A stretch of 64,000 nt of DNA from Macrostomum lignano (Eukaryota): positions 186,001 to 250,000 of the forward strand of contig NIVC01000558.1 in the NCBI GenBank assembly GCA_002269645.1, in the 5' to 3' direction. A program made the position numbers and the translations under genes. Below, one piece after another: positions 11,116 through 47,788 of the stretch. Position 1 is the first letter of the stretch; each line of letters opens with the position of its first letter. The notes beneath the pieces are model-generated. The model was not told the origin of the DNA. It did not search any database and saw only the letters and a program-made list of their open reading frames with translations.

Positions 11116-11137
11116 TCAAAGCCTTTCATGACATGGA

Positions 11138-20770: not shown

Positions 20771-20793
20771 TCAAAGCCTTTCATGACATGGAT

Positions 20794-23005: not shown

Positions 23006-23018
23006 TGGGCTTCTTATT

Positions 23019-23518: not shown

Positions 23519-23893
23519 ATCAAAGACAGACAGACAGGCACCCAGAATATATAGAAGACAGGGTAGATTTTACATCTTATCAGGGACGCGAGATAGACGC
23601 GGTTTCGGTCTTTGGAAGGCGCCGTGGACTGTTTCGAAGATTTATGCAATAAACTGACTCTGCGCAATAAGAGACTTTCTTTTAGACTACGAGCCAGAAC
23701 GAATTAAAAAACCAAGCACACTCTCCCTGGAGAGAGACTGTTGATAACTTTATACTTATTTTGCAAAAAAGTAACCTTTTTAAATAAATAGAGTCGATGC
23801 TGAAAAAATATCGGCATGGGGGCTGGTGCTGAAACATACGTATAACAAATAAATAAATATAAATAATATCTGTACACATTCAAGAAACGTACG

Positions 23894-24052
23894 TGTGACG
23901 GTGGACTTTTCTTTGTGCCACCCCATTTTTGATAAGTCTATAAATAGACCTGGTGCGCGCCAGAGGGCGATACTTGTTTTTCTCTTTGTTGCGGCTCCGT
24001 TAGGAGCCTTTGGACAATCATCTCATTCTTATTTTTTTACAAGAATGCAACA
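23894..24052 (+). repeat. 5' LTR (159 bp)
   Basis: TGTGACGGTGG...GAATGCAACA, contains TATAAATA. Confidence 0.95.
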
Positions 24053-25983: not shown

Positions 25984-28723
25984 CTAGAGCCCAAGCGCGT
26001 AAACAACGGCAAGAGTACAACAAAACGAGACAAGAAACTGCAATGCGCCCTATAACATTGGATTACGAGGCGGCCCTACAAGACGACAAGGAGTTGCAAG
26101 CAGCGGTACAAACCAACGACTTGGTGAAGGAAAGCCGCGGCAGACTGTTTCGGCATCAAGCAGCTGGAGAGGACCAACTGGTGCTTCCGAAGGCTCTGCG
26201 TGCTACGGCGCTGTCCCAGGCCCATGAGAGTGCATTCGCTGGCCACTTGGGAACAAGGAAGACTTGTCAACGACTGGAACAGCGATTCTGGTGGCCAACG
26301 ATGACAAAGGACGTGAAGGACTTCGTAGCAACGTGCGACAAGTGTCAGAAGACGGCTCGAGTCCCAGGCTATCACAAGGTACCACTAGTCCAAGTGCCTG
26401 GAGTGGAGGAGGCCTTCACCAAAGTTATCATCGATATCAGTGGACCGTATACGAGGACTGCGAGTGGTCACCAGTACATCCTGTCGATTATCGATGCGGC
26501 TACTCGATTCCCGAAGGAGTCCCGCTGCGAAAGATCGACGCTGAGTCTGTAGCGAAGGCATTGGTGGACTGCTTCGTGAGGACCGGATTCCCGAGGGAGA
26601 TCCAGAGCGATAAGGGTACTAACTTTTCATCAGCACTGCTGCAGGCCCTGTACCGGTGTACCGGGGTCGAGGGCATCCAGTCGACGCCGTACCATCCGCA
26701 AAGCCAGGCGTTGGTGGAGAGGTTCCACGGCACTCTCAAGAATATGTTGAGGAGACTACCAGCTCGCGAGAAAAATAAGTGGGACCAGTACCTACCGTTT
26801 CTGCTGTTCGCCATTCGGGAGGTGCCCAACGAAACAACTGGCTTCTCCCCATTCGAACTGCTGTACGGACGCACTGTGCGGGGACCGCTAGATCTACTGT
26901 GGCAGACCTGGGATGAGCAGCTCTCCGAAGAGAAGAAGGACATCATCTCGTTCGTGCTGGCCCAGAGAGACCGACTGCGGGCTGGCCAGGAAGCGGCACG
27001 GAACAGCGAAGAGCTAGCACGGAAGCGTCAGAAACTCTGGTACGACCGGCAGTCGCGGGAACGAGAGTTGCAGCCCGGAGATCAGGTGCTGCTGCTGCTG
27101 CCATCGTCATCCAAGAAGCTTCACGCTGAATGGCGCGGTCCCTATGAAGTACTGGAGAGGTGCAGCAATGTGAACTACCGGATCCGGATGGGCCCTGCGA
27201 CAAACACGTTTCATGTCAACCTGCTTAAGAAGTACAATTCACGGGAGACGGTTTTGATGCAGCTTCCAGCGGCAGCTACGAGTGCTCCTGAGTTGTCCGA
27301 ACATCTGACACCGGCCGAGAGAGATCGTCTCCTGCAGCTGGTGCAGGACTTCGCGGGCGTCTTCAGCGAGATCCCGGGCAGGACTGACCTAGTGGAGCAC
27401 CGTATCCGGACGACATCTGACCGCGTAGTGCGCATCCGGCCGCGACGGGAGCCGCAGGCGCATCAGCAGGTGCTCCAAGAGGAGATTCAACGCATGCTGG
27501 ACCTCGGGGTGATCGAACCATCTGACAGTGACTACTGCTCCCCGGTCTGTCTGGTGGCCAAGAAAGACAGCTCAGTCCGGTTCACTGTCAACTTCAAGGC
27601 GCTGAATGAGCTTGTGGCCTTCGACTCGTATCCGATGAAGAACATCGAGAACCTACTGGAGCGGGTCGCCAAGGCCAAGTTCATATCTAAGCTAGACTGC
27701 TGCAAGGGCTACTGGCAAATTCCACTGTACGAGGATTCAAAGCGATTGACGGCTTTCGCGGCCTGCGGCAAGCTGTATCAATTTACTGTGATGCCCATGG
27801 GCTTAAACTGCAGCAGCGCGACGTACCAAAGGCTCATGGACAAGCTGTTCCAAGGGCTGGACAACGCGGACTCCTACATCGATGACATCGCCGTGTTTAG
27901 CGCGACTTTCGAGCAGCACGTCGAGGACCTGAGAGAAGTGTTCGGTCGCCTTAAGGCTGCCGGTCTAACGGTGCAGCCCCGAAAGTGCTACCTGGGCGGC
28001 AACTCTGCTGACTACCTGGGTTTCAAGCTCGGCGGAGGCGAGATCGGTACAAGCGAGGACCGAGTGCCGACAATCACGGCGCTGGCTCAGCCCCGGACCA
28101 AGGCTCAGCTGCGATCTGTGCTCGGAGTGCTCAACCACTACCGTCGGTTCGTGCCCGATTACTCAGAAAAGGTGGCGGCCCTGACGGACCTCACGAAGAA
28201 GTCGGCACCCGATGACCTGACGGCGGCCTGGGGAGAGCAGCAGACACGAGCCTTCGAGGCAGTGAAATCTCTGCTGGCGAGCGAGCCGATGCTGCGCGCG
28301 CCGGACTACAGTCGGCAGTTTATCTTGGAGACTGACAGCTCGGAGACTGGGATCGGCGCGGTGCTAACGCAAGAACTCGAGGACGGCATCCATCCCGTGC
28401 TCTTCGTATCTCGGCGGTTGACTTCGGCGGAGTGGAGCTACGCGACGATCGAGAAGAAGTGCCTCGCCGTGCGCTGGGCGGTCAAGAAGCTGCGGCACTA
28501 CCTGCTAGGCCGCCGGTTCGTCATCAAGTCCGACCATAAGCCGCTGCAGTACCTGCAGATGGACCACGCCAACCCACGACTCCAGCGGTGGGCCTTCTAT
28601 CTGTCCGGCTATGACTACGAGATCCAGTACCAGCCAGGCGAAAGCAACACGGTGGCCGATGGTCTCAGCAGGATCTGGGCTAGTGACCGACCAAGTGATT
28701 TAGTGACCGACCAAGTGATTTAG
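25984..28723 (+). pseudogene. pol: integrase (HHCC, DDE, GPY), RT, RNase H; one frameshift in the integrase core near 26513
   Basis: AHESAFAGHLG..CDKC; IIDISGP; DAATRFP then a frame change to EGVPLRK..IQSDKGTNF..VERFHGTLK; WRGPYEV; SYIDDIAVFS; ETDSSETGIGAVL..SDHKPL..VADGLSR. Confidence 0.9.
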
Positions 28724-28760
28724 TGACTGACCAAGTGATTTAGAGACTGACTGAGCGATT
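28681..28760 (+). repeat. 20-bp tandem repeat x4 at the end of pol / 3' UTR
   Basis: Unit TAGTGACCGACCAAGTGATT. Confidence 0.85.
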
Positions 28761-28889
28761 TAACTTTTATTCAAGTCATTAGTGGCCAAGTTTGGATTGT
28801 TTTTTTTTGTAAGACTTATCCGAACTTTGCGTGACCCTGCGATTGATTTTGGCTTGCGATTTTTCCGGCTTCGATCTTTTAAAGGAGGG

Positions 28890-29048
28890 TGTGACGGTGG
28901 ACTTTTCTTTGTGCCACCCCATTTTTGATAAGTCTATAAATAGACCTGGTGCGCGCCAGAGGGCGATACTTGTTTTTCTCTTTGTTGCGGCTCAGTTAGG
29001 AGCCTTTAGACAATCATCTTATTCTTATTTATTTACAAGAATGCAACA
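28890..29048 (+). repeat. 3' LTR (159 bp)
   Basis: Matches the 5' LTR at 155/159 positions. Confidence 0.95.
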
Positions 29049-29532: not shown

Positions 29533-31313
29533 ATGGCAACACAGATGGAGCGGAAGCTGAGAGCGGCGCTGGAGGCTGGAGACAGCGAGGAGCTGCAGCG
29601 ACTGTGCGGTGAGGTCGGCAGCAACATCGAGCTGGATGTGGGCGGGTTCGACAAGCAAGACTATCCCTTTGAAGAGGTTCGCCGAATGCCGCTGGCCCAT
29701 CACGTGGCCTGCAAGCCGGTGAGCTCGTCGTGCCTGGAGCTGCTGATTGACAGATTCGGAACCGGCTGTCTGACATATGGAAATGGTAGGCTTATTCGTG
29801 AGACTCCAGTGCACTTGGCTGCCCAGCATCAGGACGAATCTTGGATGAAGCTGGTTAAAGAGAAGGGAGGCAGAGGCTGCTTGAGAATTGCCAATGAAGA
29901 TGGAAAGACAGTCGCTCACTTTGCCGCTATGAACAGAAAAAGCAACTCTTGTCTGAAGTGGCTGGTGAAGGAGCTCGGCAGCGACTGTCTCACAGTTCCT
30001 GACAAATACGGTAACACGGCCGTCCATTTGTCCGCTGAGCATCAGGGCATCGAGTCGCTGGAGTGGATCAAGAGACAGATCGGAACTGACTGCTTTCGGC
30101 TAAACGGAGGGTTCTGGAAGAGAACGGCATTTCACTTTGCTGCTCAGAAGTCTGACAATTCAAATCTGAAGTGGCTGGTGAAGGAGGTCGGCAGCGACTG
30201 TCTCACAGTTCCTGACAAAGACGGTAACACGGCCGTCCATTTGGCTGCTTGGCATCAGGGCATCGAGTCGCTGGAGTGGATCAAGAGACAGATCGGAACT
30301 GACTGCTTTCGGCTGAAGACAAAGAGTAATAGAACAGCATTTCAATTTGCTGCTGAGAAGTCTGACAATTCAAAACTGAAGTGGCTGGTGAAGGAGCTCG
30401 GCAGCGACTGTCTCACAGTTCCTGACGAATACGGTAACACGGCCGTCCATTTGGCCGCTCAGCATCAGGGCATCGAGTCGCTGGAGTGGATCAAGAGACA
30501 GATCGGAGCTGACTGCTTTCGGCTGAAGGGATTGTTGGATAGAACAGCATTTCAATTTGCTGCTGAGAAGTCTGACAATTCAAATCTGAAGTGGCTGGTG
30601 AAGGAGCTCGGCAGCGACTGTCTCACAGTTCCTGACTCTAGAGGTGACACGGCCGTCCATTTGGCGGCTCAGCATCAGGGCATCGAGTCGCTGGAGTGGA
30701 TCAAGAGACAGATCGGAACTGACTGCTTTCGGCTGAAAGGAAGGCTCGATAGAACAGCATTTCACTTTGCTGCTAAAAAGTCTGACAATTCAAATCTGAA
30801 GTGGCTGGTGAAGGAGCTCGGCAACGACTGTCTCACAGTTCCTGACAGTTACGGTAACACGGCCGTCCATTTGGCCGCTAAGCATCAGGGCATCGAGTCG
30901 CTGGAGTGGATCAAGAGACAGATCGGAGCTGACTGCTTTCGGCTGAAGGGATGGTTGGATAAAACGGCATTTCACTTTGCTGCTGAGAAGTCTGACAATT
31001 CAAATCTGAAGTGGCTGGTGAAGGAGCTCGGCAGCCACTGTCTCACAGTTCCTGACGAATACGGTAACACGGCCGTCCATTTGGCCGCTCGGCATCAGCC
31101 AGTCGACTCTCTGCAGTTCATTTTTGACCAAATCGGAGCCGAAATGTTCAGCTTGAAGAACAACAGGGGCGAAACACCGGCTGATGTTGTTGCGAGTCGG
31201 TGGTGCTACGCAGACCAGTCAGAAAAGCGGGACTGGATTTCTTCCACGCAGCGGCGGCTCGAAGCCTCTCGGCCTCCCGCTGGCAGCTCAGCGCCGACTG
31301 CCGCCTCAGCTGG
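29533..31313 (+). CDS. Ankyrin-repeat exon built from ~210-bp two-repeat (70-aa) units; spliced at its 3' end
   Basis: GCCATGG start. About 5.5 units of LKWLVKELGSDCLTVPDxxGNTAVHLAAxHQGIES / LEWIKRQIGxDCFRLKxxxxRTAFxFAAxKSDNSN. Ends GG|GTGAGT (phase 2). Confidence 0.88.
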
Positions 31314-31800
31314 GTGAGTCCTGACTGAGAGCTGCTGCCTGACACTGAAAATACTGAAAATATTGTTTGGCGAAAATTCATTGCGCTTTGATGATCGGCG
31401 CCCTGAAATTCTCAGCAGCGCCGCAGTCAAGCGAGGGCGTCATGAATCTGTCAGTGCAGCTCCTCATGGCGCCTCCAATCTCCCCATGGCGCCCCCAACC
31501 TCCCCAAGGCCACCCCAACTTCCCCATGGCGCCTCTAATCTCCACAAAGCGCCCCCAAACTTCCCACAGCTCGATTCCAGGAGTTTTTTAACACAAAGCA
31601 TCAGCGAGTTCAAGTGCCATCAAAGTCTCCGAAGTTTCAAACTCTCCGATTTTAGTCTGAATGTACTTGGTGTGATGTTCAAAATATTGGCACTTGAATG
31701 ATTTGAGAGCCTCCAATCTCTTCGTGGCGCCGCAATCTCCCGATCGCGCCCCAATGTCCACATAGCGCCACCCAAAGCTCAATCTGCAAGGCTTTTTATA

Positions 31801-32300
31801 CACGAAGCATTAGCAGAGTTTAAGTGCCGCCTTGGCGACCCAGACATGTTTAACGGGCTCACTCGTAAAACTCTTCCTACAGCGCTGCAGCTCCGCGTCC
31901 CCGCCCACGAGCTCGACAGAGCCTCCAGCCGCCTGGGCCGACTCCGGTCGGACTGCCTGAGGAGACTCGGTGAGAAATGATGAGGCGACAGTTGGTGATG
32001 GTGAACTCGTCAAAACCTGCAGTCTGAGCGCAGGCAACCAGCCAAAAGGAACCTGGCACTTCATGGCGCCCGAGGATGCTCATGGCAGAGGGATGGTGAC
32101 GCAGAAGGGTGGTGACGCAGAAGGGTGGTGACGCAGAAGGGTGGTGACGCAGAAGGGTGGTGACGCAGAAGGGTGGTGACGCAGAAGGGTGGTGACGCAG
32201 AAGGGTGGTGACGCAGAAGGGTGGTGACGCAGAAGGGTGGTGACGCAGAAGGGTGGTGACGCAGAAGGGTGGTGACGCAGAAGGGTGGTGACGCACAAGG
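31801..32300 (+). repeat. ~500-bp direct repeat, copy 2 (16-bp minisatellite x ~12)
   Basis: Matches 23019-23518. Confidence 0.92.
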
Positions 32301-32411
32301 GTGAGTGACTCTAAAGTACTCAGAAAGCCCCAAGCAATATACCAATATATAGCGTAGCGTCGAGGAGTGTTAGCTCGTTTCTGCCCTCTGCAGCCCATCA
32401 ATATTAGTGTT

Positions 32412-35400
32412 ATACGAGTGGAACTCCTCCTCTGGAGGAGAAAGGGGAAGAACTCCCAACACCGGAATTCTGAAGGGGAAGAACTCCTATCAGCTGAAAT
32501 TCCATGAATTGAATCCCATCTTCCAAATCATCTCCAAATCCTCTACAATCTATCAACTCCCATCTCTCATCTCTTGCGCCCTGCGCTCTGATTTTTATTT
32601 TTACTCTATTCTTTCTCCTCACTAATTACTCCTCTCTACACTTTCATCTCTCTCATCTCTGATCTTTCATCTCTCTTCTCCCTCCTCTCTCCCTTCTCTC
32701 GCTTCTCTCTCTCCTCTATTCCTGATCTTCTCGCTTATCTCTTCTCTCTCATTTCTCATCTCTACTCCCTTATTTTTCTCTTCTCCCTCGTCTTTCGTCT
32801 GTACCCTCTCCTGTCTACTCTCCTATCTTCTCTCTTATCTCTCCACTTTTCTCTCCTCTCTCATATCTCATCTCTACTCACTTATCTATTGTATCCGCTC
32901 TACTTTCTCTCTTCCCTTTTTTCTCTTCTCTCTTGTCTCCTCTCCTCTCTTTTCTCTCCTCTCCATTCTCTCTTCTCTCCTCTCATCTCCCCTCATCTCT
33001 TCTCTAATCTCGAATCTCTCCTCTCTGATATCTCTTCTCTACTCACTTATCTATTCTCTCTCCTCTGCTCCCCTTTTACACTTTCCTATATGCTCTCACT
33101 CCCATCCTCTCCTTTCTTATCTCCTGTTTTTTACACTCCGTTCTACCACCTGTCTCCTCTCGTTTCTCTCCTCTCTGCACTCACATCTTTACTCTCTTCT
33201 TTCTCCTCACTACTTTCTTCTCTTAAATCTCTGATCTTTGATCTTTCATCTCTCTCCTCTCACTTCTCACCTCTCTCCTCTCTTTCCTCTCTTTTATTTC
33301 CTCTGTAAGCTCTTATCCCTCATCTATTCTCTCTCCTATCATCTCTCTTGTCTCCCTTTGCTATCGAGTGGAACTCCTCCTCTGGAGGAGAAAGGGGAAG
33401 AACTCCCAACACCGGAATTCTGAAGCAATATAAGTTTCTCCTCTCAAAGTTTAAAACTCGAGGAACAGTTAGCGTTTGAAACTGTCTGATTTATAGCATT
33501 GAAGTATCGAGTGTACGTTCACTGCCTGCTTGCAAGTTGATGCATTGAATTTCAATGTCCAACAAATACACAGGGCTGCCCATTGAGAGGCAGGAAAACT
33601 TATCAGTAGCCATATCATTGCGCAATTATCTATACAGTCAGCCAGTAAGCCAGGGTCCAAGTGTACACACGCAGCCACTGAGAACGCTCCCACCCCCCAC
33701 TGGAAAAAAAATACACTACAGAGATAGGGAAAAGTTGTGGCGCAATCACTAAAAATTCGTGCATTTTTCAGCTCCAAGCAGAAAGAGGGGACAATTAAGA
33801 TTATCAAAGGTCAAGATTCAAGTTTTCTGCTTTTTTAGGGATCTTAACAATCGAAAATAAAATATTAAAATAGCCTATAGCCGACCTCGGATAATTTCCA
33901 ATCTTCCCATATAAGTTTCAACGCTGAGTTGCCACTATTCAAGGAGGAGTTGTCGAAATGACAGACACACAGACAGACATACAGACAAACAACACGTCAA
34001 CTTTAGTATATAAGTGGAACTCCTCCTTCAGAGGAGAAAGGGGAAGAACTCCCATCACCGGAATTCCATTCCCTGAAATCCATCAGCTGAAACTCCATGA
34101 CTTGAATCCCATCTTCCAAATCGTCTCCAAATTCTTTACAAAACCTTTGAAAGACCATAGCTCAAAGACTCTTACGTCTCTCATATCTCCTCTCTCCTCT
34201 CTTCGCTATTATCGTGACTCTCTTCTCTCTCCTCTCTCTCATCTCATCTCTACCCCTACTCCCTTATTTATATCTTCTCCCTGGTCTTTCGTCTCTACTC
34301 TCTCCTGTCTCATTTCTCCCCTCTTTTCTCCTCTCTTCTCTCTCCCCTCTCCTCCCTCATCTCTCATCCTTCATCTCACTCTTTCTTTCTTCTCTACTCT
34401 CCCCTCTCTTCTATTTCCCCTGTACGCTCTTATCCCTCATCTCTATTCTCTCTCCTATCATCTCTCCAAATTCTTTACAAAACCTTTCAAAGACCATAGC
34501 TCAAAGACTCTCACGTCTCTCATATCTCCTCTCTCATATCTCTTCCCTCATCTCACTCTTTCTTTCTCCTCTACTCTCCCCTCTCTTCTATTTCCTCTGT
34601 ACGCTCTTATCCGTCATCTATTCTCTTTCCTATTATCTCTCTTGTCTCCCTCTGCTATCTCATATCTCCCCTCTCATCTCCTCTCTCCTCTTCTCTTCTC
34701 TCTCCCTCTTCGTTTCCGCCTTACTCCCCTCTTCTCTTCCATCGGTCATGTCTAATCTATCCACTCATTTCTACTCTGTTTTATACCATCTCATGTCTCT
34801 TCTCTTTTTGATCTTCTCTTTACTCTCTTTTATGACTGATTGAAGATGCCAAATCTATCAAGATCCTCTCCGCGAAGCAGAAATCCTCTCCGTGAAACTG
34901 AAAACCATTGAAATCCTCTCCGCGAAACAGAAATCCTCTCCGTGAAACTGAAAACCATCGAAATTATCTCTTTAAAACTGGACTCAATCGAAATTTTCTC
35001 CGTCAAAAAGAATAAAATATTAGGATTCATTGGTTAGGGTTATTGTTAGGGTTAGGGTTAGGGTTAGAGGTACACACAGCTGCGTGTTTAAATAAAAAAT
35101 TGAGCCAATTGAATCAATTGATTGCGCAACCGATTTCAAAGTCAGTCAGTATCAGTCTCAGGTAAAGTAAACCAAAAGATTGCGCAATTTAAATCAACCC
35201 TCCAGTACACAGAGACCGGCCCCTTTTCAATACGCAGTGGCAGTTAGAAATTGAACCCGGGTGTTGGGGGCATTGAACTAAAAATGAGTACAATCTTTGC
35301 AGAAAGCTAAAAGTATGGAAATAGTTTTTGTATGCTGTGCTTTTAGTCTTTATATTTAAAGCAAACAATTTATATCCTCGAACTCAGCGTTGCAAGATCT

Positions 35401-38400
35401 TTTCAGCAGTATAAGTCTCTTCTCTTAAAGTTTAGAACTCGAAGAGCAGTTAGCGTTTGAAAGTTCCCGTTTTAAAGCATTGAAATATCGAGTGTACGTT
35501 CACTGCCTGCCAAAGAGGCTCGCAAGTTTATTCATTCATTACACAGGCCGGCTATTACACGGGGCAGCCTATTAAAAGGCACAGATAATGAAACAAATTG
35601 ATGTCGCAACCGATTTCACAGTCAGTCATTATCAGTCTCAGTTAAAGTTAACAAAAACATTGCGCAATATAAATCAACCCTCCAATCCACAGCAGTAGTG
35701 AGAAGTTGAACCCTCCCCCCAACTTTATCTATTTCGTCTCGCAAAACTGAGTACAATATTTGCAAAAAGTTAAAAGTATGGAAATAGTTTTTCAAATGCT
35801 GTGCTTTTTCTTTTCATATTTAAAGCAAACAATTTATATCCCCGAACTCAGCGTTCCAAGATCTTTCCAGCAATATAAGTCTCTTCTTTCAAAGTTTAAA
35901 ACTCGAGGAACAGTTAGCGTTTGAAACTGTCTGATTTATAGCATTGAAGTATCGATTGTACGTTCACTGCCTGCTAAAGAGGCCCGCAAGTTTATGCATT
36001 GAATTTCAAGGTTCAACAAAATCACAGGGCTGCCTATTGAAAATTAGAACACAAATATTTGCGCAATTGTCTATACAGTCAGCCAGTGAGCCAGGGTCCG
36101 ATTGTACACAGGCAGCCATTTAGAACGCCCCATCCCCCCCACTGGAGAGAAACTACACTGCAGAGATAGTGAAAAGTTGTGGCGCAATCACTTGAAATTC
36201 ATGCAAATTTTCAGCTCCAAGCAGAAAGAGGGGACAATTAAGATTATCAAAGGTCAAGACCGCCGTTTTCTGCTTTTTTGAGGATCTTAGAAATTAAAAT
36301 TTCAGAATTAAAATAGCCTATAGCCGACCTCGGATAATTTCCAATCTTCCCATATAAGTTTCAACGCTGAGTTGCCACTATTCAAGGAGGAGTTGTCGAA
36401 ATGACACACACACACACAGACAGACAAACAACACGTCAACTTTAGTATATACGAGTGGAACTCCTCCTTCGGAGGAGAAAGGGGAAGAACTCCCATCACC
36501 GGAATTCTATTCCCTGAAATATCCATCAACTGAAATTCCATGTCTTTAACCCTATCTTCCAAATCGTCTCCAAATTCTTTACAAAATCTTTCAAAGACCA
36601 TAGCTCAAAGACTCTCAAGTCTCTCATATCTCCTCTCTCCTCTCTCTCATCTCATCTCTACCCCTGCTCCCTTATTTATCTCTTCTCCCTCGTCTTTCGT
36701 CTGTACCTTCTCCTGTCTTCTGTCTCCTCTCTTCACTCTTATCTCTCCCTCTTCTCTCCTCTCTCATATGTCATCTCTACTCACTTATCTATCGTCTCTC
36801 TTAACCCTCTCTCTCTCTTCTCTTTTCTCTTCTCTCTGCTCTCATTTCTCATATTTCATATACGCTCTGACACTACTTTCTTGTCTCCCATCTTTCTTCC
36901 TCCTTTTCACTATCCCCTGTCTCTTCTCTTCTCTCTTTTCTATTCTCTCCATTCTCTCTTTTCTCATTTCCTTGCTCCTTTCATCTCTCTCCTCTCTCCT
37001 CACTCTCTTCTCCTTTCGCTTCTCTCTCCTCTCTCTCCTCTCATCTTTACTACCTTATTTATATCTTCTCCTTAGTCTTTCGTCTGTACTCTCTCCTGTC
37101 TCCTCTCTCCCCTGCTCTCTCATCCCTCATCTCCTCATCTCACTCTTTCTTTCTCCTCTACTCTCCCCTCTCTTATATTGCCTCTGTACGCTCTTATCCC
37201 TCATCTATTCTCTCTCCTATCATCTCCAATCTGTCATGTCTAATCTCTCCACTCAATTATACTCTGTTTTCTATCATCTCTTCTCTCTTCTCTTTTCAGT
37301 CTTCTCTTTACTCTCTTCTCTGACTGATTGAAGATGCCAAATCCATCAAGATCCTCTCCGCGAAGCAAAAATCCTGTCTGTGCAACTAAAAACCATCGAA
37401 ATCCTCTCAGTGAAACTGGACTCCTTCGAAATCCTCTCCTTGAAACTTAAATCCATCAAAATTGTTTCCATAAAACAGAAATCAATCATAAATTATCTCC
37501 GCGAAACAGAAAGCCTCTCCGTGAAGCTGAACATGATCGAAATCCTCTCCGTGAAACTGAACACCATGGAAATCCTTTCGTGAAACTGAACATCATCGAA
37601 ATCCTCTCCACGAAACAGAAATCTTCTCCGTCAGAATTTAAACATTGAAATCGTCTCCGTTAAACTTGACTTAATCGAATTTTTTCCGTCAAACAACTTA
37701 ACTCGCCAGATTCATTAGGGTTAGGGTTAGGGTTAGGGTTAGGGTTAGAACTACGCACAGCTTCGTGTTAAAAGGCACAGATAAAAATATTGAACTAATT
37801 GAATCAATTCATTGCGCAACCGATTTCACAGTCAGTATCAGTCTCAGTTAAATTTAACCAAAAGATTGCGCAATTTAAATCAACCCTCCAGTACACAGAG
37901 ACCGACCCCTTTTCAATACGCTGTGGCAGTTAGAAATTGAACCCCCATCTGTTGGGGGCATTGAACCAAAAAATGAGTACAATCTTTGCAGAAAGCTAAA
38001 AGTATGGAAATAGTTTTTTTGATGCTGCTCTTTCAGTCTTTATATTGAAAGCTAACAATTTATATCCTCGAACTCAGCGTTGCAAGATCTTTTCAGCAGT
38101 ATAAGTCTCTTCTCTTAAAGTTTAGAACTCGAAGAGCAGTTAGCGTTTGAAAGTTTCCGTTTTAAAGCATTAAAATATCGAGTGTACGTTCACTGCCTGC
38201 CAAAGAGGCTCGCAAGTTGATTCATTCACTACACAGGCCGGCTATTACACAGGGCAGCGTATTGAAAGGCACAGATAATAAAACAAATTGATGGTGCAAC
38301 CGATTTCACAGTCAGTCAGTATCAGTCTCAGTTAAAGTTAACAAAAACATTGCGCAATCTAAATCAACCCTCCAATACACAGCAGCAGTGAGAAGTTGAA

Positions 38401-41400
38401 CCCTCCCCCAACTTTATCTATTACGTCTCGCAAAACTGAGCACAATTTTTGCAGAAAGTTAAAAGCATGGAAATAGTTTTTTCAATGCTGTGCTTTTTCT
38501 TTTTATATTTAAAGCAAACAACTTATATCCCCGAACTCAGCGTTGCAAGATCTTTCCAGCAATATAAGTTTCTCCTCTGAAAGTTTAAAACTCGAGGAAC
38601 AGTTAGCGTTTGAATTTACCAATTTCCCGACTACTTGCTAGAGAAGCTCGCAAGTTTATTCATTGAATTTCACTGCCAAACTAATACACAGGGCCGATAA
38701 TAAAAAATGAACCAATTGAATCAATTGATTGTGCAATATATTTCTGTGTTAGTCAGTATCAGTCTCAGTTAAAGTTAACAAACAGATTGCGCAATCTAAA
38801 TCAACCCTCAAATACACACCGACCGACCTCCTAACTGTTGGGGGGTCGGTCGAACGCCATTGAAATCCTAAAATGAGTACAATCTTTGCAGAAAGTTTAA
38901 AGTATGGAAATAGTTTTTTCAATGCTGTGCTTTTTCTTTTCATATTTAAAGCAAACAATTTATATCCCTGAAATCAGCTTTGCAAGTTCTTTCCAGCAAT
39001 ATTAATTTTTTCTCTCAAAGTTAAAAACTCGAGCAACAGTTTGCGTTTGAAACTTTCTGATTTAAAGCATTGAAATATCAATTGTACGTTCACTGCCTGC
39101 TAAAGAGGCCCGCAAGTTTATGCATTGAATTTCAAGGTTCAACAAAACACAGGGCTGCCTATTGAAAATTAGAACACAAATCTTTGCGCAATTGTCTATA
39201 AAGTCAGCCGGTGAGCCAGGGTCCGATTGTACACATGCAGCCATTTAGAACGCCCCATCCCCCACTGGAGAGAAAATACACTGCAGAGATAGGGAAAAGT
39301 TGTGGCGCAATCACTTGAAATTCATGCAAATTTTCAGCTCCAAGCAGAAAGAGGGGACAATTAAGATTATCAAAGGTCAAGACCGCCGTTTTCTGCTTTT
39401 TTGAGGATCTTAGAAATTAAAATTTCAGAATTAAAATAGCCTATAGCCGACCTCGGATAATTTCCAATCTTCCCATATAAGTTTCAACGCTGAGTTGGCA
39501 CTATTCAAGGAGGAGTTGTCGAAATGACAGACAGACAGACAGACAAACAACACGTCAACTTTAGTATATATAGACGAGTGGAACTCCTCCTTCGGAGGAG
39601 AAAGGGGAAGAACTCCCATCACCGGAATTCCATTCCCTGAAATATCCACCAACTGAAATTGCATTTCTTGAACCCTATTTTCCCAATCGTCTCCAAATTC
39701 TTTACAAAACCTTTCAAAGACCATGGCTCAAAGACTCTCACGTCTCTGATATCTCCTCTCTCCTCTCTTTGCTATTATCGTGACTCTCTTCTCTCTCCTC
39801 TCTCTCATCTCATCTCCACCCCTACTCCTTATTTATCTCTTCTCCCTTGTCTTTCGTCTGTACCTTCTCCTGTCTCTTGTCTCCTCTCTTCTCTCATATC
39901 TCTCCTCTTCACTTCTGTCTCCTGTATCCTCTCTTCGCTCTTATCTCTTCCTCTTCTCTTCTCTCTCATGTCATCTCTACTCACTTGTCTATCGTCTCTC
40001 TTAACCCTCTCTTTCTTCTCTTTTCTCTCCTCTCAGCTCTCATTTATCATATCTCATATACGCTCTCACACTCTACTTTCTTGTCTCCCATCTTTCTTTC
40101 CTTCTTTCCACTATCCCCTGTCTCTTCTCTTCTCTCTTTTATATCCTCTCCATTCTCTCTTTTCTCCTCTCCTTGCTCCTTTAATCTTCTCCCCTCTCTT
40201 CTCTAATCTCTAATCTCTTCTCTCTTATGTTCTCACGCATCTCTTCTCATCGCATCTCTTATCTCTCCTCTCCTCACTACTTTCCTCTCTTAACTCTCTC
40301 ATCTCTGATCTTTCATCTCTCTCCTCTCTCCTCACTCTCTTCTCCTTTCGCTTCTCTCTCCTCTCTCTCCTCTCATCTCTACTACCTTATTTATATCTTC
40401 TCCCTGGTCTTTCGTCTGCTCTCTCTCCTGTCTCCTTTCTCCCCTCTTTTCTCTTCTCTTCTCTCTCCTTTCCTCTCTCATCTCTCATCCCTCATCTCAC
40501 TCTTTCTTTCTCCTCTACTCTCCCCTCTCTTCTATTTCCTCTGTACGCTCTTATCCCTCATCTATTCTCTCTCCTATTATCTCTCTTGTCTCCCTTTGCT
40601 ATCTCATATCTCCCCTCTCATCTCCTCTCTCCTCTTCTCTTCTCTCTCCCTCTTCGTTCCCGCCTTACTCCCCTCTTCTCTCCCATCTGTCATGTCTAAT
40701 CTCTCCATTCATTTCTACTCTGTTTTCTATCATGTCATCGCTCTTCTCTTTTCATTCTTCTCTTTACTCTCTTCTCTGACTGATTGAAGATGCCAAATCC
40801 ATCAAGATCCTCTCTGCGAAGCAGAAATCTTGTCTGTGCAACTGAAAACCATCGAAATCCTCTCCGTAAAACTGGACTCCTTCGAAATCCTCTCATTAAA
40901 ACTTAAATCCATCAAAATCGTCTCCATAAAACAGAAATCAATTATAAATTATCTCCGCGAAACAGAAATCCTCTCCGTGAAGCTGAACATCATCGAAATC
41001 CTCTCTTCGTGAAACTGAACATCATCGAAATCCTCTCTTCGTGAAACTGAACATCATCGAAATCCTCTCCACGAAACAGAAATCCTCTCCGTCAAAATTA
41101 AAACATTGAAATCGTCTCCGCTAAACTGGACTCAATCAGTTTTTTTCCGTCAAACAACTTAACTTTCCAGATTCATTGGTTAGGGTTAGGGTTAGGGTTA
41201 AAACTACGCACAGCTTCGTGTTAAAAGGCGCTGATAAAAATATTGAACTAATTGAATCAATTCATTGCGCAACCGATTTCACAGTCAGTCAGTATCAGTC
41301 TAAGTTAAAGTTAACAAAAACATTGCGCAATCTAAATCAACCCTCCAATACACAGCAGCAGTGAGAAGTTGAACTCTCCCCCAACTTTATCTATTACGTC

Positions 41401-42063
41401 TCGCAAAACTGAGTACAATTTTTGCAGAAAGTTAAAAGTATGGAAATAGTTTTTTCAATGCTGTGCTTTTTCTTTTCATATTTAAAGCAAACAATTTATA
41501 TCCCTGAAATCAGCTTTGCAAGTTATTTCCAGCAATATTAATTTTTTCTCTCAAAGTTAAAAACTCGAGCAACAGTTTGCGTTTGAAACTTTCTGATTTA
41601 AAGCATTGAAATATCAATTGTACGTTCACTGCCTGCTACAGAGGCCCGCAAGTTTATGCATTGAATTTCAAGGTTCAACAAAATCACAGGGCTGCCTATT
41701 GAAAATTAGAACACAAATCTTTGCGCAATTGTCTATACAGTCAGCCAGTGAGCCAGGGTCCGATTGTACACAGGCAGCCATTTAGAACGCCCCATCCCCC
41801 CACTGGAGAGAAAATACACTGCAGAGATAGGGAAAAGTTGTGGCGCAATCACTTGAAATTCATGCAAATTTTCAGCTCCAAGCAGAAAGAGGGGACAATT
41901 AAGATTATCAAAGGTCAAGACCGCCGTTTTCTGCTTTTTTGAGGATCTTAGAAATTAAAATTTCAGAATTAAAATAGCCTATAGCCGACCTCGGATAATT
42001 TCCAATCTTCCCATATAAGTTTCAACGCTGAGTTGCCACTATTCAAGGAGGAGTTGTCGAAAT

Positions 42064-42095
<32 letters not shown>

Positions 42096-45000
42096 ACGCG
42101 TCAACTTTAGTATATATAGATAGAAACTCCTCCTCCGAAGGAGAAAGGGGAAGAACTCCCATCACCGGAATTCTATTCCCTGAAATATCCATCAACTGAA
42201 ATTCCATGTCTTTAACCCTATCTTCCAAATCGTCTCCAAATTCTTTACAAAATCTTTCAAAGACCATAGCTCAAAGACTCTCAAGTCTCTCATATCTCCT
42301 CTCTCCTCTCTCTCATCTCATCTCTACCCCTGCTCCCTTATTTATCTCTTCTCCCTCGTCTTTCGTCTGTACCTTCTCCTGTCTTCTGTCTCCTCTCTTC
42401 ACTCTTATCTCTCCCTCTTCTCTCCTCTCTCATATGTCATCTCTACTCACTTATCTATCGTCTCTCTTAACCCTCTCTCTCTCTTCTCTTTTCTCTTCTC
42501 TCTGCTCTCATTTCTCATATTTCATATACGCTCTGACACTACTTTCTTGTCTCCCATCTTTCTTCCTCCTTTTCACTATCCCCTGTCTCTTCTCTTCTCT
42601 CTTTTCTATTCTCTCTATTCTCTCTTTTCTCCTTTCCTTGCTCCTTTCATCTCTCTCCTCTCTCCTCACTCTCTTCTCCTTTCGCTTCTCTCTCCTCTCT
42701 CTCCTCTCATCTTTACTACCTTATTTATATCTTTCGTCTGTACTCTCTCCTGTCTCCTCTCTCCCCTGCTCTCTCATCCCTCATCTCCTCATCTCACTCT
42801 TTCTTTCTCCTCTACTCTCCCCTCTCTTCTATTGCCTCTGTACGCTCTTATCCCTCATCTATTCTCTCTCCTATCATCTCCAATCTGTCATGTCTAATCT
42901 CTCCACTCAATTATACTCTGTTTTCTATCATCTCTTCTCTCTTCTCTTTTCAGTCTTCTCTTTACTCTCTTCTCTGACTGATTGAAGATGCCAAATCCAT
43001 CAAGATCCTCTCCGCGAAGCAAAAATCCTGTCTGTGCAACTAAAAACCATTGAAATCCTCTCCGTGAAACTGAACACCATGGAAATCCTTTCGTGAAACT
43101 GAACATCATCGAAATCCTCTCCACGAAACAGAAATCTTCTCCGTCAGAATTTAAACATTGAAATCGTCTCCGCTAAACTTGACTTAATCGAATTTTTTTC
43201 GTCAAACAACTCAACTCGCCAGATTCATTAGGGTTAGGGTTAGGGTTAGGGTTAGGGTTAGAACTACGCACAGCTTCGTGTTAAAAGGCACTGATAAAAA
43301 TATTGAATTAATTGAATCAAATCATTGCGCAACCGATTTCACAGTCAGTCAGTATCAGTCTCAGTTAAAGTTAACAAAAACATTGCGCAATCTAAATCAA
43401 CCCTCCAATACACAGCAGCAGTGAGAAGTTGAACCCTCCCCCAACTTTATCTATTACGTCTCGCAAAACTGAGTACAATTTTTGCAGAAAGTTAAAAGTA
43501 TGGAAATAGTTTTTTAAATGCGGTGCTTTTTCTTTTCATATTTAAAGCAAACAACTTATATCCCTAAACTCAGCGTTGCAAGATCTTTCCAGCAATATAA
43601 GTCTCTCCTCTCAAAGTTTAAAACTCAAGGAGCAGTTAGCGTTTGAAATTTACCGATTTCCTGACTGCTTGCCTGAGAGGCTCGCAATTTTGTACATTGA
43701 ATTTCACTGCCAAGCTAATACACAGGGCCGATAATAAAAAAGCTAACCAATTGAATCAATTGATTGCGCAATATATTTCTGTGTTAGTCAGTATAAGTCT
43801 CAGTTAAAGTTAACACAAAGTTTGCGCAATCTAATCAACCCTCCAATACAAAGCAACTGACCCCCTTCCTATACACAGCGCCAGTTAGAAGTCGAAACCC
43901 CCAACTTTATCTCTCACCTCTCGCCAAAATGAGTACAATCTTTGCAGAAAGTTTAAAGTATGGAAATAGTTTTTGCAATGCAGAGCTTTTAGTTTTCATA
44001 TTTGAAGCAAACAATTTATATCCCTGAAATCAGCTTTGCAAGTTCTTTCCAGCAATATAAATTTTTTCTCTCAAAGTTAAAAACTCGAGCAACAGTTTGC
44101 GTTTGAAACTTTCTGATTTAAAGCATTGAAATATCGATTGTACGTTCACTGCCTGCTAAAGAGGCCCGCAAGTTTATGCATTGAATTTCAAGGTTCAACA
44201 AAATCACAGGGCTGCCTATTGAAAATTAGAACACAAATCTTTGCGCAATTGTCTATACAGTCAGCCAGTGAGCCAGGGTCCGATTGTACACAGGCAGCCA
44301 TTTAGAACGCCCATCCCCCCACTGGAGAGAAAATACACTGCAGAGATAGGGAAAAGTTGTGGCGCAATCACTTGAAATTCATGCAAATTTTCAGCTCCAA
44401 GCAGAAAGAGGGGACAATTAAGATTATCAAAGGTCAAGACCGCCGTTTTCTGCTTTTTTGAGGATCTTAGAAATTAAAATTTCAGAATTAAAATAGCCTA
44501 TAGCCGACCTCGGATAATTTCCAATCTTCCCATATAAGTTTCAACGCTGAGTTGCCACTATTCAAGGAGGAGTTGTCGAAATGACAGACACACAGACAGA
44601 CAGACAAACAACACGTCAACTTTAGTATATACGAGGCCAACTCCTCCTTCGGAGAAGAAAGGGGAAGAACTCCAATCAGCGGAATTCCATTCCCTGAACT
44701 CCATCAGCGGAATCCCATTTTCCAACACCTCTCCGCGCAACAGAAATCGTCTCCGTGAAACTGAACACTATCGAAATCCTCTCCGTGAAACTGAACACCA
44801 TCGAAATATTCTCCGCGAAATAGAAATCCTCTCCGTGAAACTGGACTAAATCGAAATTTCTACGTCAAATAGCCCAGCTCTCAGAATTCATTGGTTAGGG
44901 TTAGGGTTAGGGTTGACAGCTGCGTGTTGAAAGGCGCCGTAAAAACATTGAACCAATTAAATTGCGCAACTTATTTCTCAGGCAGTCAGTATCAGCCTCA

Positions 45001-45920
45001 GTTAAAGTTAACAAAAAGATTGCGCAATCTAAATCAACCCTCAAATACACAGCAACCGACCCCCCTTCCAATACGCAGTGCAGCTAGAAATTGAACTCCC
45101 CCCACCAACTATTGGGGGTCGGTCGAACCCCCATTGAACTCCAAAATGAGCACAATCTTTGCAGAAAGCTAAAAGTATGAAAATCTTTTCTTGAATGCTG
45201 TGAATTTAATTTTCATATTTAAAGCAAAAAACTTATATCCCCGAACTCATTGCAGCAAGATCTTTCCAGCAATATAAGTCTCTCCTCTCTAAGTTCAAAA
45301 CTCGAGCAACAGTTAGTGTTTGAAACTTTCTGATTTTAAGCATTGAAATATCGAGTGTACGTTCACTGCCTGCTAAAGATGCTCGCAAGTTTATGCATTA
45401 AAATGCACTGAATTTCACTGTGCAAAAAATACACAGGGCTTCCTGTTAAAAAACAGAACACAAATAGTTGCGCAATTGTCTATAAAGTCAGTCAGTGAGC
45501 CAGGGTTCAAGTGTACACACGCAGCCACTGAGAACGCGACCATCCCCCACTTGAGAGAAAATACACTGCCAAGATAGAAAAATTTTATGGCGCAATCACT
45601 AAAATTGATGCAAATTTTCAGCTCCAAGCAGAAAGAGGGGACAATTAAGATTATCAAAGGTCAAGACCGCCATTTTCTGCTTTTTTAGGGATCTTAAAAA
45701 TTGAAAATGAAAGATTAAAATAGCCTAAAGCCATCCTCGGAAAATTTGCAGTTTTCCCATATAAGTTTCAACGCTGACTTGCAAGTATTCTAGGAGGAGT
45801 TATCCAACAAACACACACACACACAGACAAACAACGCACCAACTTTAGTATTAAGATATCCAACAAACACACACACACACAGACAAACAACGCACCAACT
45901 TTAGTATTAAGATAGATAGA
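32412..45920 (-). mobile_element. Head-to-tail array of about 6 non-autonomous Helitron/Helentron-like units (1.3-3.1 kb each)
   Basis: Unit junctions near 32414, 34013, 36452, 39575, 42122, 44632 and 45915. On the minus strand each unit starts TC/TATA(T)ACTAAAGTTG followed by a (GTCT/GT)n microsatellite. Each ends with a CTCCTCC-nnn-GGAGGAG hairpin a few nt before CTCG. Internal ~480-bp AT-rich subrepeats, a (TTAGGG)n tract and a CT-rich tract are present. The repeat structure is certain; the Helitron assignment is inference. Confidence 0.6.
35033..35067 (+). repeat. Interstitial (TTAGGG)n; further tracts at 37715-37748, 41180-41200, 43228-43261 and 44895-44914
   Basis: 3-6 telomeric hexamers, each preceded by GATTCATT/GAATTCATT. 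Confidence 0.92.
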
Positions 45921-46431
45921 AGATAGATAGATAGAGAGTTAGCGGGCGTGAAATCGCGTTTCACGGCCCGCTGAGACTGTCTATGGTAAATCCCATCGAC
46001 TCCAATGCATTCAGTCGGTTTCACGGCCCGCTAAAAGTGTCTATGACAAAGCCAGAATAAAGCGGGGTCAAGGGGGCGCTGAGCACACCAGCACTCTAGA
46101 CAAGGTAAGAAAGAATAAAATCAAAAAAATTGTCTATGGCCAAAACTCTTTTTTGCGAATTTAAAAATAAGCACTATTTTGCAGTACTAAGCCTAACTTT
46201 TAATATAGACAAGATGTGAAAATATTGACTAGATATTGGTTTTTGCGAGCTATCTCAGGCAAGGAGCAAGCAAACTCATCCATCCCATAGATTTCAATAC
46301 GACGAAGGAGGTGGTTTGAACCATAGACTATCACGTTTTTTCAACCAAACTCATCCAACGGGCGAGCAATCTCAGCCATAGCTTGTCTGCCCATTCATTT
46401 CCTCTTCCCTTCTTTCTTTCCTCCTCCTCCG

Positions 46432-46677
46432 ATGGCTCAGTTGCGACAAACATCCAACTCCGACAGAGAGAAGCTAATCAACGCATGGAATGACGGACAA
46501 AATTTGAGCACTGCTTCACGCATTCTCGGGATAAAGCTGAAGACGTCCAGACATATAATCCGGACTTACGTAGCTACTGGAAGAATTGCTGCTCTCCAAC
46601 GTGGCGGAATAAGGGAGGAATCAAGCAAGATTGACGTGCTGCTCTATCATAAAGTCTCTTATATACGAACCAATTAA
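46432..46677 (+). mobile_element. N-terminal HTH fragment of an IS630/Tc1/mariner-like transposase
   Basis: SDREKLINAWNDG..STASRILGIKLKTSRHIIRTYVATGRIAALQRGG fits the HTH...RGG pattern. No DDE domain is present. Confidence 0.5.
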
Positions 46678-46783
46678 ATTTTTCGCTTAATAAACAAGCT
46701 ATCCCATGCCTTTCACACCGTTTAAGTACACTTAGTCTAACTATAACACAAAGTTCATCGTGTTCCTTCATTTCATGATTCAG

Positions 46784-47788
46784 CGCCAAGAAGCAGCTGG
46801 ACCCCAGCTTCACCGACTGGGACTTCATCCTGCAGGACGACAAGAAGCAGCTCATCGGTCGTGGCGGATTCGGTGAGGTGTACAAGGCCCTCACAGACCG
46901 CAACCAGACGGTGGCTGTCAAGGTGCTGCCCCTGAGCGGCACCGGCCAATCGAGGAAGCTGCAGAAAGCCGTCGAGATGGAGAAGCGGGGAGTTGAGATC
47001 ATCAAGCGACTCTCGCATCCCAACATTCTGCAGTTCCTCAAGTGCGAGCAGAAGTCGGACGGGCTGTACATCTTCACCGAGCTGGTCTCGGGTCACAGCC
47101 TCTTTGAGCTGATGCAGCGTCAGAACAAGCCGTTCAAGGAGTCCGGGGTCAGGGACTTCTCCAGACAGGTGCGTCTCTGAGTTCTCTGGCATTTTCTGGT
47201 AAGGGTGGGATCAGGGTGGAATCAGTGTGGGATCAGGGTGGGATCAGTGTGGAATCAGTGTGGGATGCACTTTTTGACTACTCAAAACTGCTCCACCTGC
47301 AGATCTGCTCAGGCCTAAACTTCCTGCACTGCCAGCCGGAGGGCGCCATCTTGCACCGTGATATCAAGAGCTCTAATATTATGCTCACCAACGAGGGCGT
47401 CATCAAGCTGATCGACTTCGGCCTCGCTAAGGAGATCATCGGCACCTGTGGCCTGAGCACAGGCGTCGATCCCAAAGGCACCCCCTACTTCATGGCGCCC
47501 GAGCTGTTCATGGGCGAGGGCGATTCGATTCCGTATTCAGCCAAGACCGACGTGTGGGCCTTTGGCTGCACCGTGTATGAGCTGACGGCCATGGAGCCTC
47601 CTGACGCGAACGTTCCGCAAATCAGGATCGGCATCGTGAGGTGCGGAGGGCGGGCGATGCCTCGGATTGCGGACGGGTTCTCAGCCGGCATGAAGGACTT
47701 CTACCTCAGGTGCGTAGACTATGACCCGAGGAAGCGAGCGGACACCACGGAGCTGCTGCGGCACAGCTTCCTGAGTGCCTCATCGTGA
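46784..47788 (+). CDS. Ser/Thr protein kinase domain (STE/MAP3K-like); exons 46784-47168 and 47303-47788; 5' exon upstream
   Basis: [38 protein letters not shown] and DVWAFGC are all present. Intron CAG|GTGCGT..CTGCAG| is phase 0. The first exon begins after ATTCAG| in phase 2 with no ATG. Confidence 0.9.

Follow-up and report, generated by a model that had tools for sequence, protein, structure and literature searches.

Hypervariable positions in a homogenised ankyrin-repeat array of an ankyrin-kinase gene from the flatworm Macrostomum lignano

The WD, ankyrin (ANK) and tetratricopeptide (TPR) repeats designated highly internally conserved (HiC) in fungal NOD-like receptors (NLRs) show concerted evolution, polymorphism of repeat number, and sites under positive selection in the hairpin and on the concave face of ankyrin (PMC4986451), and were found in only 0.8 % of metazoan ANK/TPR/WD repeat proteins by Dyrka et al. 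(PMC4986451). A comparable array is described here from Macrostomum lignano, in a stretch of 64,000 nucleotides (assembly GCA_002269645.1, contig NIVC01000558.1, positions 186,001 to 250,000 of the forward strand; hereafter the window, with positions counted from its first letter), where it occupies the first exon of a gene that joins ankyrin repeats to a protein kinase (annotated locus BOX15_Mlig020446g2). Near-identical repeats with hypervariable binding-surface residues mark genes needing new specificities fast, and this regime has been documented mainly in fungal NLRs; here it appears in an animal and in a different architecture. Such repeats are also present in bacterial NLRs. The array is reasonably likely to be the ligand-binding domain of a germline-encoded, probably cytosolic ankyrin-STE kinase protein that has been diversified at its binding surface.

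Hypervariable positions in a homogenised array

The array extends from 29956 to 31098 and comprises five full units and one half unit, with in-frame unit starts at 29956, 30169, 30379, 30589, 30799 and 31009. Tandem Repeats Finder placed it at 29952-31098, with 5.4 copies of a 210 period, 91 % matches and, at the resolution of the program, no indels. Each unit codes for two ankyrin repeats of 35 residues, the canonical length being 33: a type A repeat, D-x-x-G-x-TAVHLAA-x-H-QGIESLEWIKRQIGTDCFRL, and a type B repeat, K-G-x-x-D-R-TAFHFAA-x-KSDNSNLKWLVKELGSDCLTVP. The 210-bp unit given in the initial annotation holds for units 2-5, which have 70 codons, and not for unit 1, which has 213 bp and 71 codons, its extra codon being in the loop (NGGFWK vs KTKSN and others). 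The units are listed below with the variable residues of repeat A, the B loop and the variable residue that follows it.

29956..30168, forward strand: unit 1, 213 bp, KY-G-N...E-H; B loop NGGFWK...Q
30169..30378, forward strand: unit 2, 210 bp, KD-G-N...W-H; B loop KTKSN...E
30379..30588, forward strand: unit 3, 210 bp, EY-G-N...Q-H; B loop KGLLD...E
30589..30798, forward strand: unit 4, 210 bp, SR-G-D...Q-H; B loop KGRLD...K
30799..31008, forward strand: unit 5, 210 bp, SY-G-N...K-H; B loop KGWLDK...E
31009..31098, forward strand: half unit 6, repeat A only, EY-G-N...R-H; homology stops after codon 30

The differences between units lie in short patches, which in unit 1 are at 30004-30015 (A positions 2-5), 30037-30042 (A13-14), 30103-30123 (B loop) and 30145-30147 (B13), and in units 2-5 at +48..+59, +81..+86, +147..+164 and +186..+188 from the unit start. 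DNA identity among units 1-5 is 98.9 % outside the patches and 65.1 % inside, and about 50 scaffold codons are without a single synonymous difference. Anchored on T-x-x-H-x-A-A, the variable codons of units 1-5 are positions 2, 3, 5 and 13 of repeat A and positions 1-5, 9 and 13 of repeat B. The residue series quoted in the initial annotation (KY/KD/EY/SR/SY/EY and E/W/Q/Q/K/R for type A; NGGFWK/KTKSN/KGLLD/KGRLD/KGWLD and Q/E/E/K/E for type B) and its codon swaps (AAA TAC, TCT AGA, AGT TAC; GAG, TGG, CAG, AAG, CGG) are all present.

A published ankyrin library was randomised at positions 2, 3, 5, 10, 13 and 14, which point outward on one surface (PMC3308923). Twelve codons were defined a priori for the comparison, namely the designed-ankyrin library positions 2, 3, 5, 13 and 14 plus the last residue of each repeat, and these hold 64 % of the pairwise nucleotide differences among units 1-5 (permutation p about 5e-6). 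The original designed ankyrin repeat protein (DARPin) design reportedly randomised positions 2, 3, 5, 13, 14 and 33. The near-invariant scaffold with variation at designed-binder positions, first described from the window alone, recurs at all nine loci and in the sister subfamily described below.

DNA of eight further family loci was added to the window locus to give nine loci with 37 full and 9 half units. The ANK domain is a single open exon at each of the nine, of up to 1153 codons, and the ANK exon of a sister kinase gene is likewise open, making ten intact ANK exons. The full units per locus number 5 (window), 4, 13, 3, 3, 2, 2, 3 and 2. The 13-unit locus (L003, 3001-6462) shares its contig with the window; in the genome it is one open exon of 1153 codons, but it is annotated as a protein with 5 units. 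Across all full and half units the amino acid entropy is 1.1-2.9 bits at codons 17, 18, 20, 28, 29, 53, 54 and 64 and at most 0.9 bits at all others. These eight hypervariable codons are positions 2, 3, 5, 13 and 14 of repeat A and 2, 3 and 13 of repeat B, and all eight lie inside the 12 a-priori codons (chance about 5e-8, hypergeometric, C(12,8)/C(70,8)), which over the nine loci hold 67 % of the nonsynonymous pairwise differences (permutation p 5e-6). The commonest of the 341 hypervariable residues are D, Q, H, K, E, L and R, then W and Y; Pro, Ala, Met and stop codons are absent.

The ANK exon matches Pfam Ank_2 (1.5e-46) and Ank_4 (1.9e-44), and the AlphaFold2 model of its 594 amino acids (predicted local distance difference test score, pLDDT, 92.8; predicted template modelling score, pTM, 0.82) has a helix pair in every repeat over the full length, the first ~140 and last ~70 residues forming non-identical capping or degenerate repeats. 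The top Foldseek matches are NOMPC, ankyrin-1/B, TRPA1 and DARPins, with E values from 1e-21 to 1e-10. From profile and predicted fold the exon product is assigned to the ankyrin repeat superfamily, in agreement with the DARPin-like array proposed in the initial annotation. On the model, helix 1 of repeat A terminates in codons 28-29, its final two residues, and the loop that precedes it includes codons 17-20; helix 1 of repeat B terminates in codon 64, and codons 53-56 belong to the hairpin that leads into it. Anchored on T6-x-x-H9-x-A11-A12, these correspond to ankyrin positions 2, 3, 5, 13 and 14 in repeat A and 2, 3, (4, 5) and 13 in repeat B.

A sister subfamily has a unit of 70/71 codons, CLKWLVNECGTDCLSVRDQQGNTPVHLAAWKQGADSMQFFKSVLGSDCFHQPGxxQRTAIHxAAxNEATNS, and in 13 units its hypervariable sites are A3, A5, A13 and A14 and B2, B3, B5, B10 and B13. 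The beta-turn and the end of helix 1 that are predicted to face outward (positions 2, 3, 5, 13 and 14, and also 10 in the sister subfamily) stand out in the alignments as about ten-fold more diverged.

Substitution rates were obtained as pairwise Nei-Gojobori estimates of nonsynonymous (dN) and synonymous (dS) divergence, as follows.

15 patch codons: dN 0.39, dS 0.20
N-terminal flank, between paralogues: dN 0.087, dS 0.129 (dN/dS 0.67)
C-terminal flank, between paralogues: dN 0.128, dS 0.112 (dN/dS 1.14)
Scaffold, between loci: dN 0.029, dS 0.067
Scaffold, within a locus: dN 0.019, dS 0.029

The scaffold dN/dS is about 0.6. Patch dN is 2 to 13 times every synonymous yardstick, the ratio being 2.0-2.4 against dS of the patch codons themselves, 3 against flank dS and 6-13 against scaffold dS. 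The dN/dS check suggested in the initial annotation is borne out by these pairwise values and not by the minimal-step ratio inside the hypervariable codons, which is about 1.0 and is taken up below. Nucleotide diversity at codon positions 1/2/3 is 0.56/0.45/0.28 in the hypervariable codons versus 0.023/0.020/0.052 in the scaffold; the hypervariable codons show the reverse of the usual third-position excess. Codons 20 and 28 combine a highly variable first base with an invariant third, and codon 64 comes close to this. A deliberately conservative minimal-step count, taken from a minimum spanning tree over the distinct codons per column, gave a nonsynonymous rate in the eight hypervariable codons of 3.2 times the unit-wide synonymous rate (p 5e-8). 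In the reading adopted here, variant cassettes would outlast the permitted scaffold divergence, and replacement changes would be favoured in them.

In scaffold DNA, units of one locus are 2.1 % apart and units of different loci 3.6 % (permutation p 2e-4); in the patches the two distances are nearly equal, at 26 % and 28 %, and scaffold dS (0.03-0.07) is lower than flank dS (0.11-0.13). Some scaffold variants are common to the units of one locus, these being M70 in L002, G40 and I61 in L003, and L37 and N5 in L005. By these patterns the units can be seen to have been homogenised by gene conversion and unequal crossing-over, inside single paralogues of the clusters as well as from one paralogue to another, and the variable patches to have acted as cassettes re-assorted between units and loci. 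In the 37 units, 24 distinct A cassettes and 28 distinct B cassettes form 35 combinations. One identical cassette, TCT AGA GGT GAC (SRGD), occurs 11 times at six loci (unit 4 of the window and five others) and adjoins at least 7 different B loops, and the unit 5 cassette A44 with KGWLDK and E is also present in L003. Block duplications are indicated in the 13-unit locus, where units 3 and 7 are identical and the pairs 5/12, 2/11 and 4/9 are 4-8 nt apart. Protein P0012 of an older assembly lacks exactly 210 residues (three units) of the window protein but is otherwise the same, with an in-register junction at codons 18/19; it is a genuine variant from unequal exchange, or else the assembly collapsed there. 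The mosaic cassettes and the range of 2-13 units make reshuffling by germline recombination or gene conversion well supported.

Gene structure, effector domains and genomic neighbourhood

The open reading frame (ORF) that carries the array has its first ATG at 29533 and an in-frame TGA at 31315-31317. Exon 1 closes at a splice donor, GCTGG/GTGAGT (exon/intron), which places the TGA in the intron, and the donor GG/GTGAGTCCTG is identical to the base at the ANK exon end of all nine paralogues examined. The kinase fusion escaped the initial annotation because the TGA sits in this donor. The ORF was rejected as a complete gene, its stop being inside the GTGAGT donor with the kinase exons 15 kb downstream. 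The parts of the gene are as follows.

29533..31313, forward strand: exon 1, 594 amino acids, ankyrin throughout (ORF, translation, Pfam Ank families)
29533..29955, forward strand: N-terminal cap and ~2.5 degenerate, non-homogenised ankyrin repeats, residues 1-141 (translation, AlphaFold2 helix pattern)
31099..31313, forward strand: C-terminal capping repeat and ANK domain tail (PVDSLQFIFDQIG...TAASAG), not homogenised (translation, AlphaFold2)
31883..31969, forward strand: exon 2, 29-amino-acid Pro/Arg-rich linker (AAAPRPRPRARQ...EETR) (exact match to the tail of the annotated protein, AG/GT boundaries)
31970..46783, forward strand: intron 2, 14.8 kb, full of satellites and CT-rich low-complexity repeats
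46784..47168, forward strand: exon 3, protein kinase N-lobe with G-loop GRGGFG and VAVK (tblastn 99 % to P0002, boundaries, Pfam Pkinase)
47303..47788, forward strand: exon 4, kinase C-lobe and stop codon (sequence comparison, exon boundaries)

The conceptual spliced product has 912 amino acids, with AG/GT at all exon boundaries, and is predicted to have an ankyrin solenoid of ~16 repeats at its N-terminus and a kinase at its C-terminus, with a short linker in between. Exon 2 is a cassette exon of the same phase and is missing from some paralogue models (e.g. P0001). A 528-bp segment that contains exon 2 and a 16-bp satellite (GCAGAAGGGTGGTGAC, 14 copies), at 31790-32316, is duplicated at 23008-23525 with 96 % identity, upstream of a retrotransposon; the upstream copy has no adjoining ANK exon and may be the remnant of a rearranged or lost paralogue. 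Intron 2 is strongly CT-rich (33-46 kb), with GC skew down to -0.45 and repeated Ser/Leu-rich pseudo-ORFs.

The kinase part matches Pfam Pkinase (5.7e-57), and its catalytic motifs, including APE, are complete, from which it is predicted to be active. Of the kinases with solved structures, SLK, STK25, MST4 and MAP3K5 are the most similar to it (E about 1e-35), and its nearest named relatives outside Macrostomum are MAP3Ks of the MEKK/NPK1/ANP1 type (STE11), with 34-36 % identity; from these similarities it is classed, at group level, as an STE (MAP3K/STE20-like) Ser/Thr kinase. The close homologues of the window protein are all ANK and protein-kinase proteins of M. lignano, and the best named match to the array outside the flatworms is RIPK4 (E about 1e-19, 29 % identity). 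The protein has a hydrophilic N-terminus, with helix predicted there, and no signal peptide or membrane segment is evident in the 912-amino-acid protein by eye, without a predictor; the protein is probably cytosolic. The initial annotation had proposed a diversifying recognition receptor assembled from shuffled repeat cassettes, and its shuffling stands as germline reshuffling, while the term receptor can be kept only provisionally for a protein of this kind. No NACHT or NB-ARC domain was found by Pfam on the ANK exon and kinase part, where all matches were to Ank and Pkinase families, or in the precomputed domain lists of all paralogues.

The annotated model of this locus (P0002) has 840 amino acids and omits 216 nt of the array (30532-30747), a gap without GT..AG boundaries that is most likely the artefact of a collapsed transcript. 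P0002, with 4 units, was rejected as a copy-number variant, since it models this very locus and its gap is non-canonical. Current gene models of these loci are wrong in that repeat units are skipped (840 vs 912 amino acids here; 5 vs 13 units at L003).

In the sister subfamily, a kinase gene (L010) and a caspase gene (L011) differ by 0.75 % in scaffold DNA and by 35 % in the hypervariable codons. The caspase end of L011 matches Pfam Peptidase_C14 (1.6e-42, p20 domain), and the order of ankyrin pro-domain and caspase is found only in the sister-subfamily genes P0022, P0024 and P0026; the window gene ends in the kinase. One putative sensor-type array is combined, to judge from the predicted domains, with two effector domains, kinase or caspase. 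At L011 3696-6085, upstream of the ANK-caspase gene, the assembly has a gap (a run of N), and repeats of the same type occur there as fragments with shifted frames.

A tblastn search of the window found no further unit copies or donor cassettes, and its other ankyrin ORFs are unrelated canonical ANK genes. Long intron-free ORFs of mutually diverged canonical 33-residue repeats are present at 645-2120 (-), 2546-4891 (+) and 50697-51440 (-), with Ank_2 matches up to 6e-170; they share only 20-30 % identity with the homogenised array and are unrelated to it, and the contig is unusually rich in ankyrin genes. Segmental duplications are present in the window: the 781-amino-acid ORF at 2546-4891 is partly copied at 12407-13333, and an ankyrin ORF of ~200 amino acids is present in two copies (7952-8566 and 51871-52539). 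Two near-identical 426-amino-acid ORFs (5481-6761 and 13923-15203) have a weak match to the Mab-21 C-terminal domain (E 2.4e-5), and a 716-amino-acid ORF at 61757-63907 (-), with Pfam Ion_trans at 1.4e-5 and weak N-terminal ankyrin similarity, is possibly an exon of a TRP-type channel.

A Ty3/gypsy long terminal repeat (LTR) retrotransposon occupies 23893-29048, ~480 bp upstream of the ATG of the ankyrin-kinase gene. Its ORFs code for gag/SCAN-like and protease (24010-25443) and integrase-RT-RNase H (26264-28723; RT, reverse transcriptase), and it is flanked by a 160-bp direct repeat of 97.5 % identity (23893-24052 and 28889-29048), likely the LTRs. Satellites in the window include a 36-bp repeat of ~33 copies found twice (9942-11124 and 19622-20779), a 31-bp repeat (45 copies, 17349-18751), a GC-rich 19-bp repeat (96 copies, 58195-59961) and an ACT run (159 copies, 51201-51678).

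Proposed function and alternative explanations

In the explanation proposed here, concave-surface diversity would be kept or promoted by selection for new binding specificities. The array would bind a variable target, non-self or otherwise fast-evolving, and so control the attached effector, either through clustering or by lifting autoinhibition, leading to mitogen-activated protein kinase (MAPK)-type signalling or cell death; by analogy, the family would work as a NOD-less counterpart of repeat-based innate receptors. Candidate ligand classes are a pathogen, a virus or transposon product, and an allogeneic or reproductive partner. A broader proposal is that these genes form an undescribed animal intracellular recognition class, in which reshuffled hypervariable ankyrin arrays are wired, NOD-less, to a MAP3K-like kinase or a caspase and provide a germline non-self repertoire, possibly with high-frequency rearrangement between or within individuals; this is put forward tentatively, as a suggestion rather than an expectation.

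Several observations weigh against selection for binding diversity. Minimal-step densities inside the eight hypervariable codons are equal, at 2.55 nonsynonymous and 2.52 synonymous per site, the synonymous value drawing on only 9 steps (2 being the Ser TCT/AGT pair) in 3.6 sites, so that omega above 1 depends on the synonymous reference chosen. Site by site, only codons 18 and 53 (2/8) survive Bonferroni correction in a very conservative minimal-step Poisson test. Synonymous differences also cluster in or beside the patches, a pattern to be expected of long-retained cassettes but equally of a local effect on mutation. Tree-based tests are not valid under recombination, and the rates used are pairwise or minimal-step. 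The clustering of the variable residues on one surface is suggested by position equivalence and secondary structure, not by measured distances. The whole family evolves fast, as the flank dN/dS values of 0.67 and 1.14 attest, and relaxed constraint therefore contributes. Neutral relaxation with concerted evolution would turn the same minimal-step ratio, synonymous clustering and high flank values into a full account, in which the scaffold is held uniform by gene conversion and purifying selection, exposed positions are unconstrained, the patches drift and partly escape homogenisation, and binding diversity is not selected. This account is improbable. Co-converted neutral sites should stay at or below the scaffold dS of 0.03-0.07 or the flank dS of 0.11-0.13, whereas patch dN is 0.39; codon positions 1 and 2 are more diverse than position 3, which does not vary in codons 20 and 28 and hardly varies in codon 64; and Pro, Ala, Met and stop codons are missing from all 341 hypervariable residues. 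The patches, at 1-6 codons, are moreover too short to block conversion tracts and have visibly moved as cassettes, and an independent subfamily is hypervariable at the same positions.

The same diversifying ankyrin sensor might instead be directed at a target other than a pathogen, such as reproductive or sexual-conflict partners, germ-line transposon or viral proteins, or variable endogenous kinase substrates. The ligand is not named by anything in the sequence, the gene lies in transposon-rich DNA with the gypsy element close upstream, and M. lignano is a model for sexual conflict, where reproductive genes evolve fast; the caspase fusion of the same array type is, however, more typical of death or defence signalling than of substrate recruitment, and such a target is considered unlikely, though it deserves more weight than neutral drift. 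Somatic or programmed diversification, by rearrangement as in the variable lymphocyte receptors (VLRs) of jawless vertebrates or by hypermutation through a dedicated enzyme or a diversity-generating retroelement (DGR), would accommodate the re-assorted cassettes, the in-register loss of three units in P0012 and a reverse transcriptase gene upstream. The genes are nevertheless complete and open in the germline at all loci, the window has no bank of incomplete donor cassettes and no other unit copy by tblastn, substitutions are not adenine-specific and spare third positions, and the three-unit difference is equally explained by assembly collapse, all of which leaves this mechanism very little credence. 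The upstream reverse transcriptase was rejected as a source of the variation, as the element encoding it is of the ordinary Ty3/gypsy kind and also has gag, protease, RNase H, integrase and direct repeats on its flanks. Just as implausible is an assembly or annotation artefact, in which the repeat would be mis-assembled or chimeric and its variation sequencing error. The assembly is long-read-based, annotated models disagree with the genome at the window locus and at L003, and the L011 region has frameshifts and a gap; on the other side, the differences are in-frame whole-codon substitutions and not indels, the ANK exons of all nine close paralogues and of the sister kinase gene, ten in total, are intact, identical cassettes occur at different loci, and the variation is limited to the same codons everywhere.

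Should the arrays bind non-self ligands, they would represent an independent invention of a variable intracellular receptor repertoire, and a natural experiment on the limits of ankyrin scaffold diversification with relevance to binder engineering. M. lignano is a laboratory model amenable to RNA interference and transgenesis, which makes the idea testable.

Comparison with known systems

Searches of the literature, of which coverage was incomplete, turned up no account of the family in Macrostomum other than that of ANK-caspases, and a description elsewhere is possible. The ANK-caspases of platyhelminths (Lee 2014; Horkan 2024, PMC11463336) resemble the sister subfamily in combining an N-terminal ankyrin array with a caspase p20 domain, and differ from the window gene, which carries a kinase. 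In the parts of PMC11463336 consulted, an M. lignano caspase with a kinase-like pro-domain adjoins the ANK-caspase clade, and internal repeat conservation and hypervariable sites are unmentioned for ANK-caspases.

An ankyrin array and a protein kinase domain are also combined in RIPK4/ANKK1, ILK and TNNI3K. In contrast to RIPK4/ANKK1, where a RIP-type kinase is N-terminal, the window gene has the ANK domain first and a C-terminal kinase nearest to STE kinases. ILK and TNNI3K have the same ANK-then-kinase order as the window gene, and the kinases of RIPK4, ILK and TNNI3K belong to the tyrosine kinase-like (TKL) group. Near-identical repeats with hypervariable sites are not known from RIPK4/ANKK1, ILK or TNNI3K.

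The array differs from DARPins in being natural, in having repeats of 35 and not 33 residues and in alternating two repeat types with different loop lengths; its position 33 is invariable, and its B loop varies also in length and at positions 1 and 4. It resembles the VLRs as a putative repeat-protein recognition module with concave-surface diversity and cassette copying. VLRs, however, are built of leucine-rich repeats, are assembled in somatic cells, where flanking donor cassettes fill a germline gene that is incomplete, and are secreted or anchored in the membrane, whereas the flatworm genes are complete in the germline, built of ankyrin repeats and apparently cytosolic. Unlike in DGRs, all bases are substituted and not adenine only, and the nearby reverse transcriptase is part of a Ty3/gypsy gag-pol.

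The closest known parallel, by analogy, is with the HiC ANK/TPR/WD repeats of fungal NLRs, to which the flatworm family is similar without being a member. As in those repeats, the array is at least 85 % identical along 100 amino acids or more (five 70-amino-acid units, 91 % nucleotide identity), evolves in concert with exchange within and between loci, and varies in unit number, in the flatworm between paralogues (2-13) of one assembly. The few hypervariable sites likewise lie, by position equivalence, on the concave ankyrin face, within the inner helix and the beta-hairpin/loop, and one repeat type is joined to different effector domains in a protein that is intracellular, for the flatworm as judged by eye. 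The flatworm genes differ from fungal NLRs in that the array is fused straight to the effector without NACHT or NB-ARC, is N-terminal and not C-terminal, has an STE-group kinase or a caspase as effector and is found in an animal host, and in that homogenisation concerns a unit of 70 codons, two repeats of 35 residues each, and not a single repeat of 33-34 residues. On this comparison the family may be described as an animal, NOD-less, kinase- or caspase-coupled version of the highly conserved repeat sensors.

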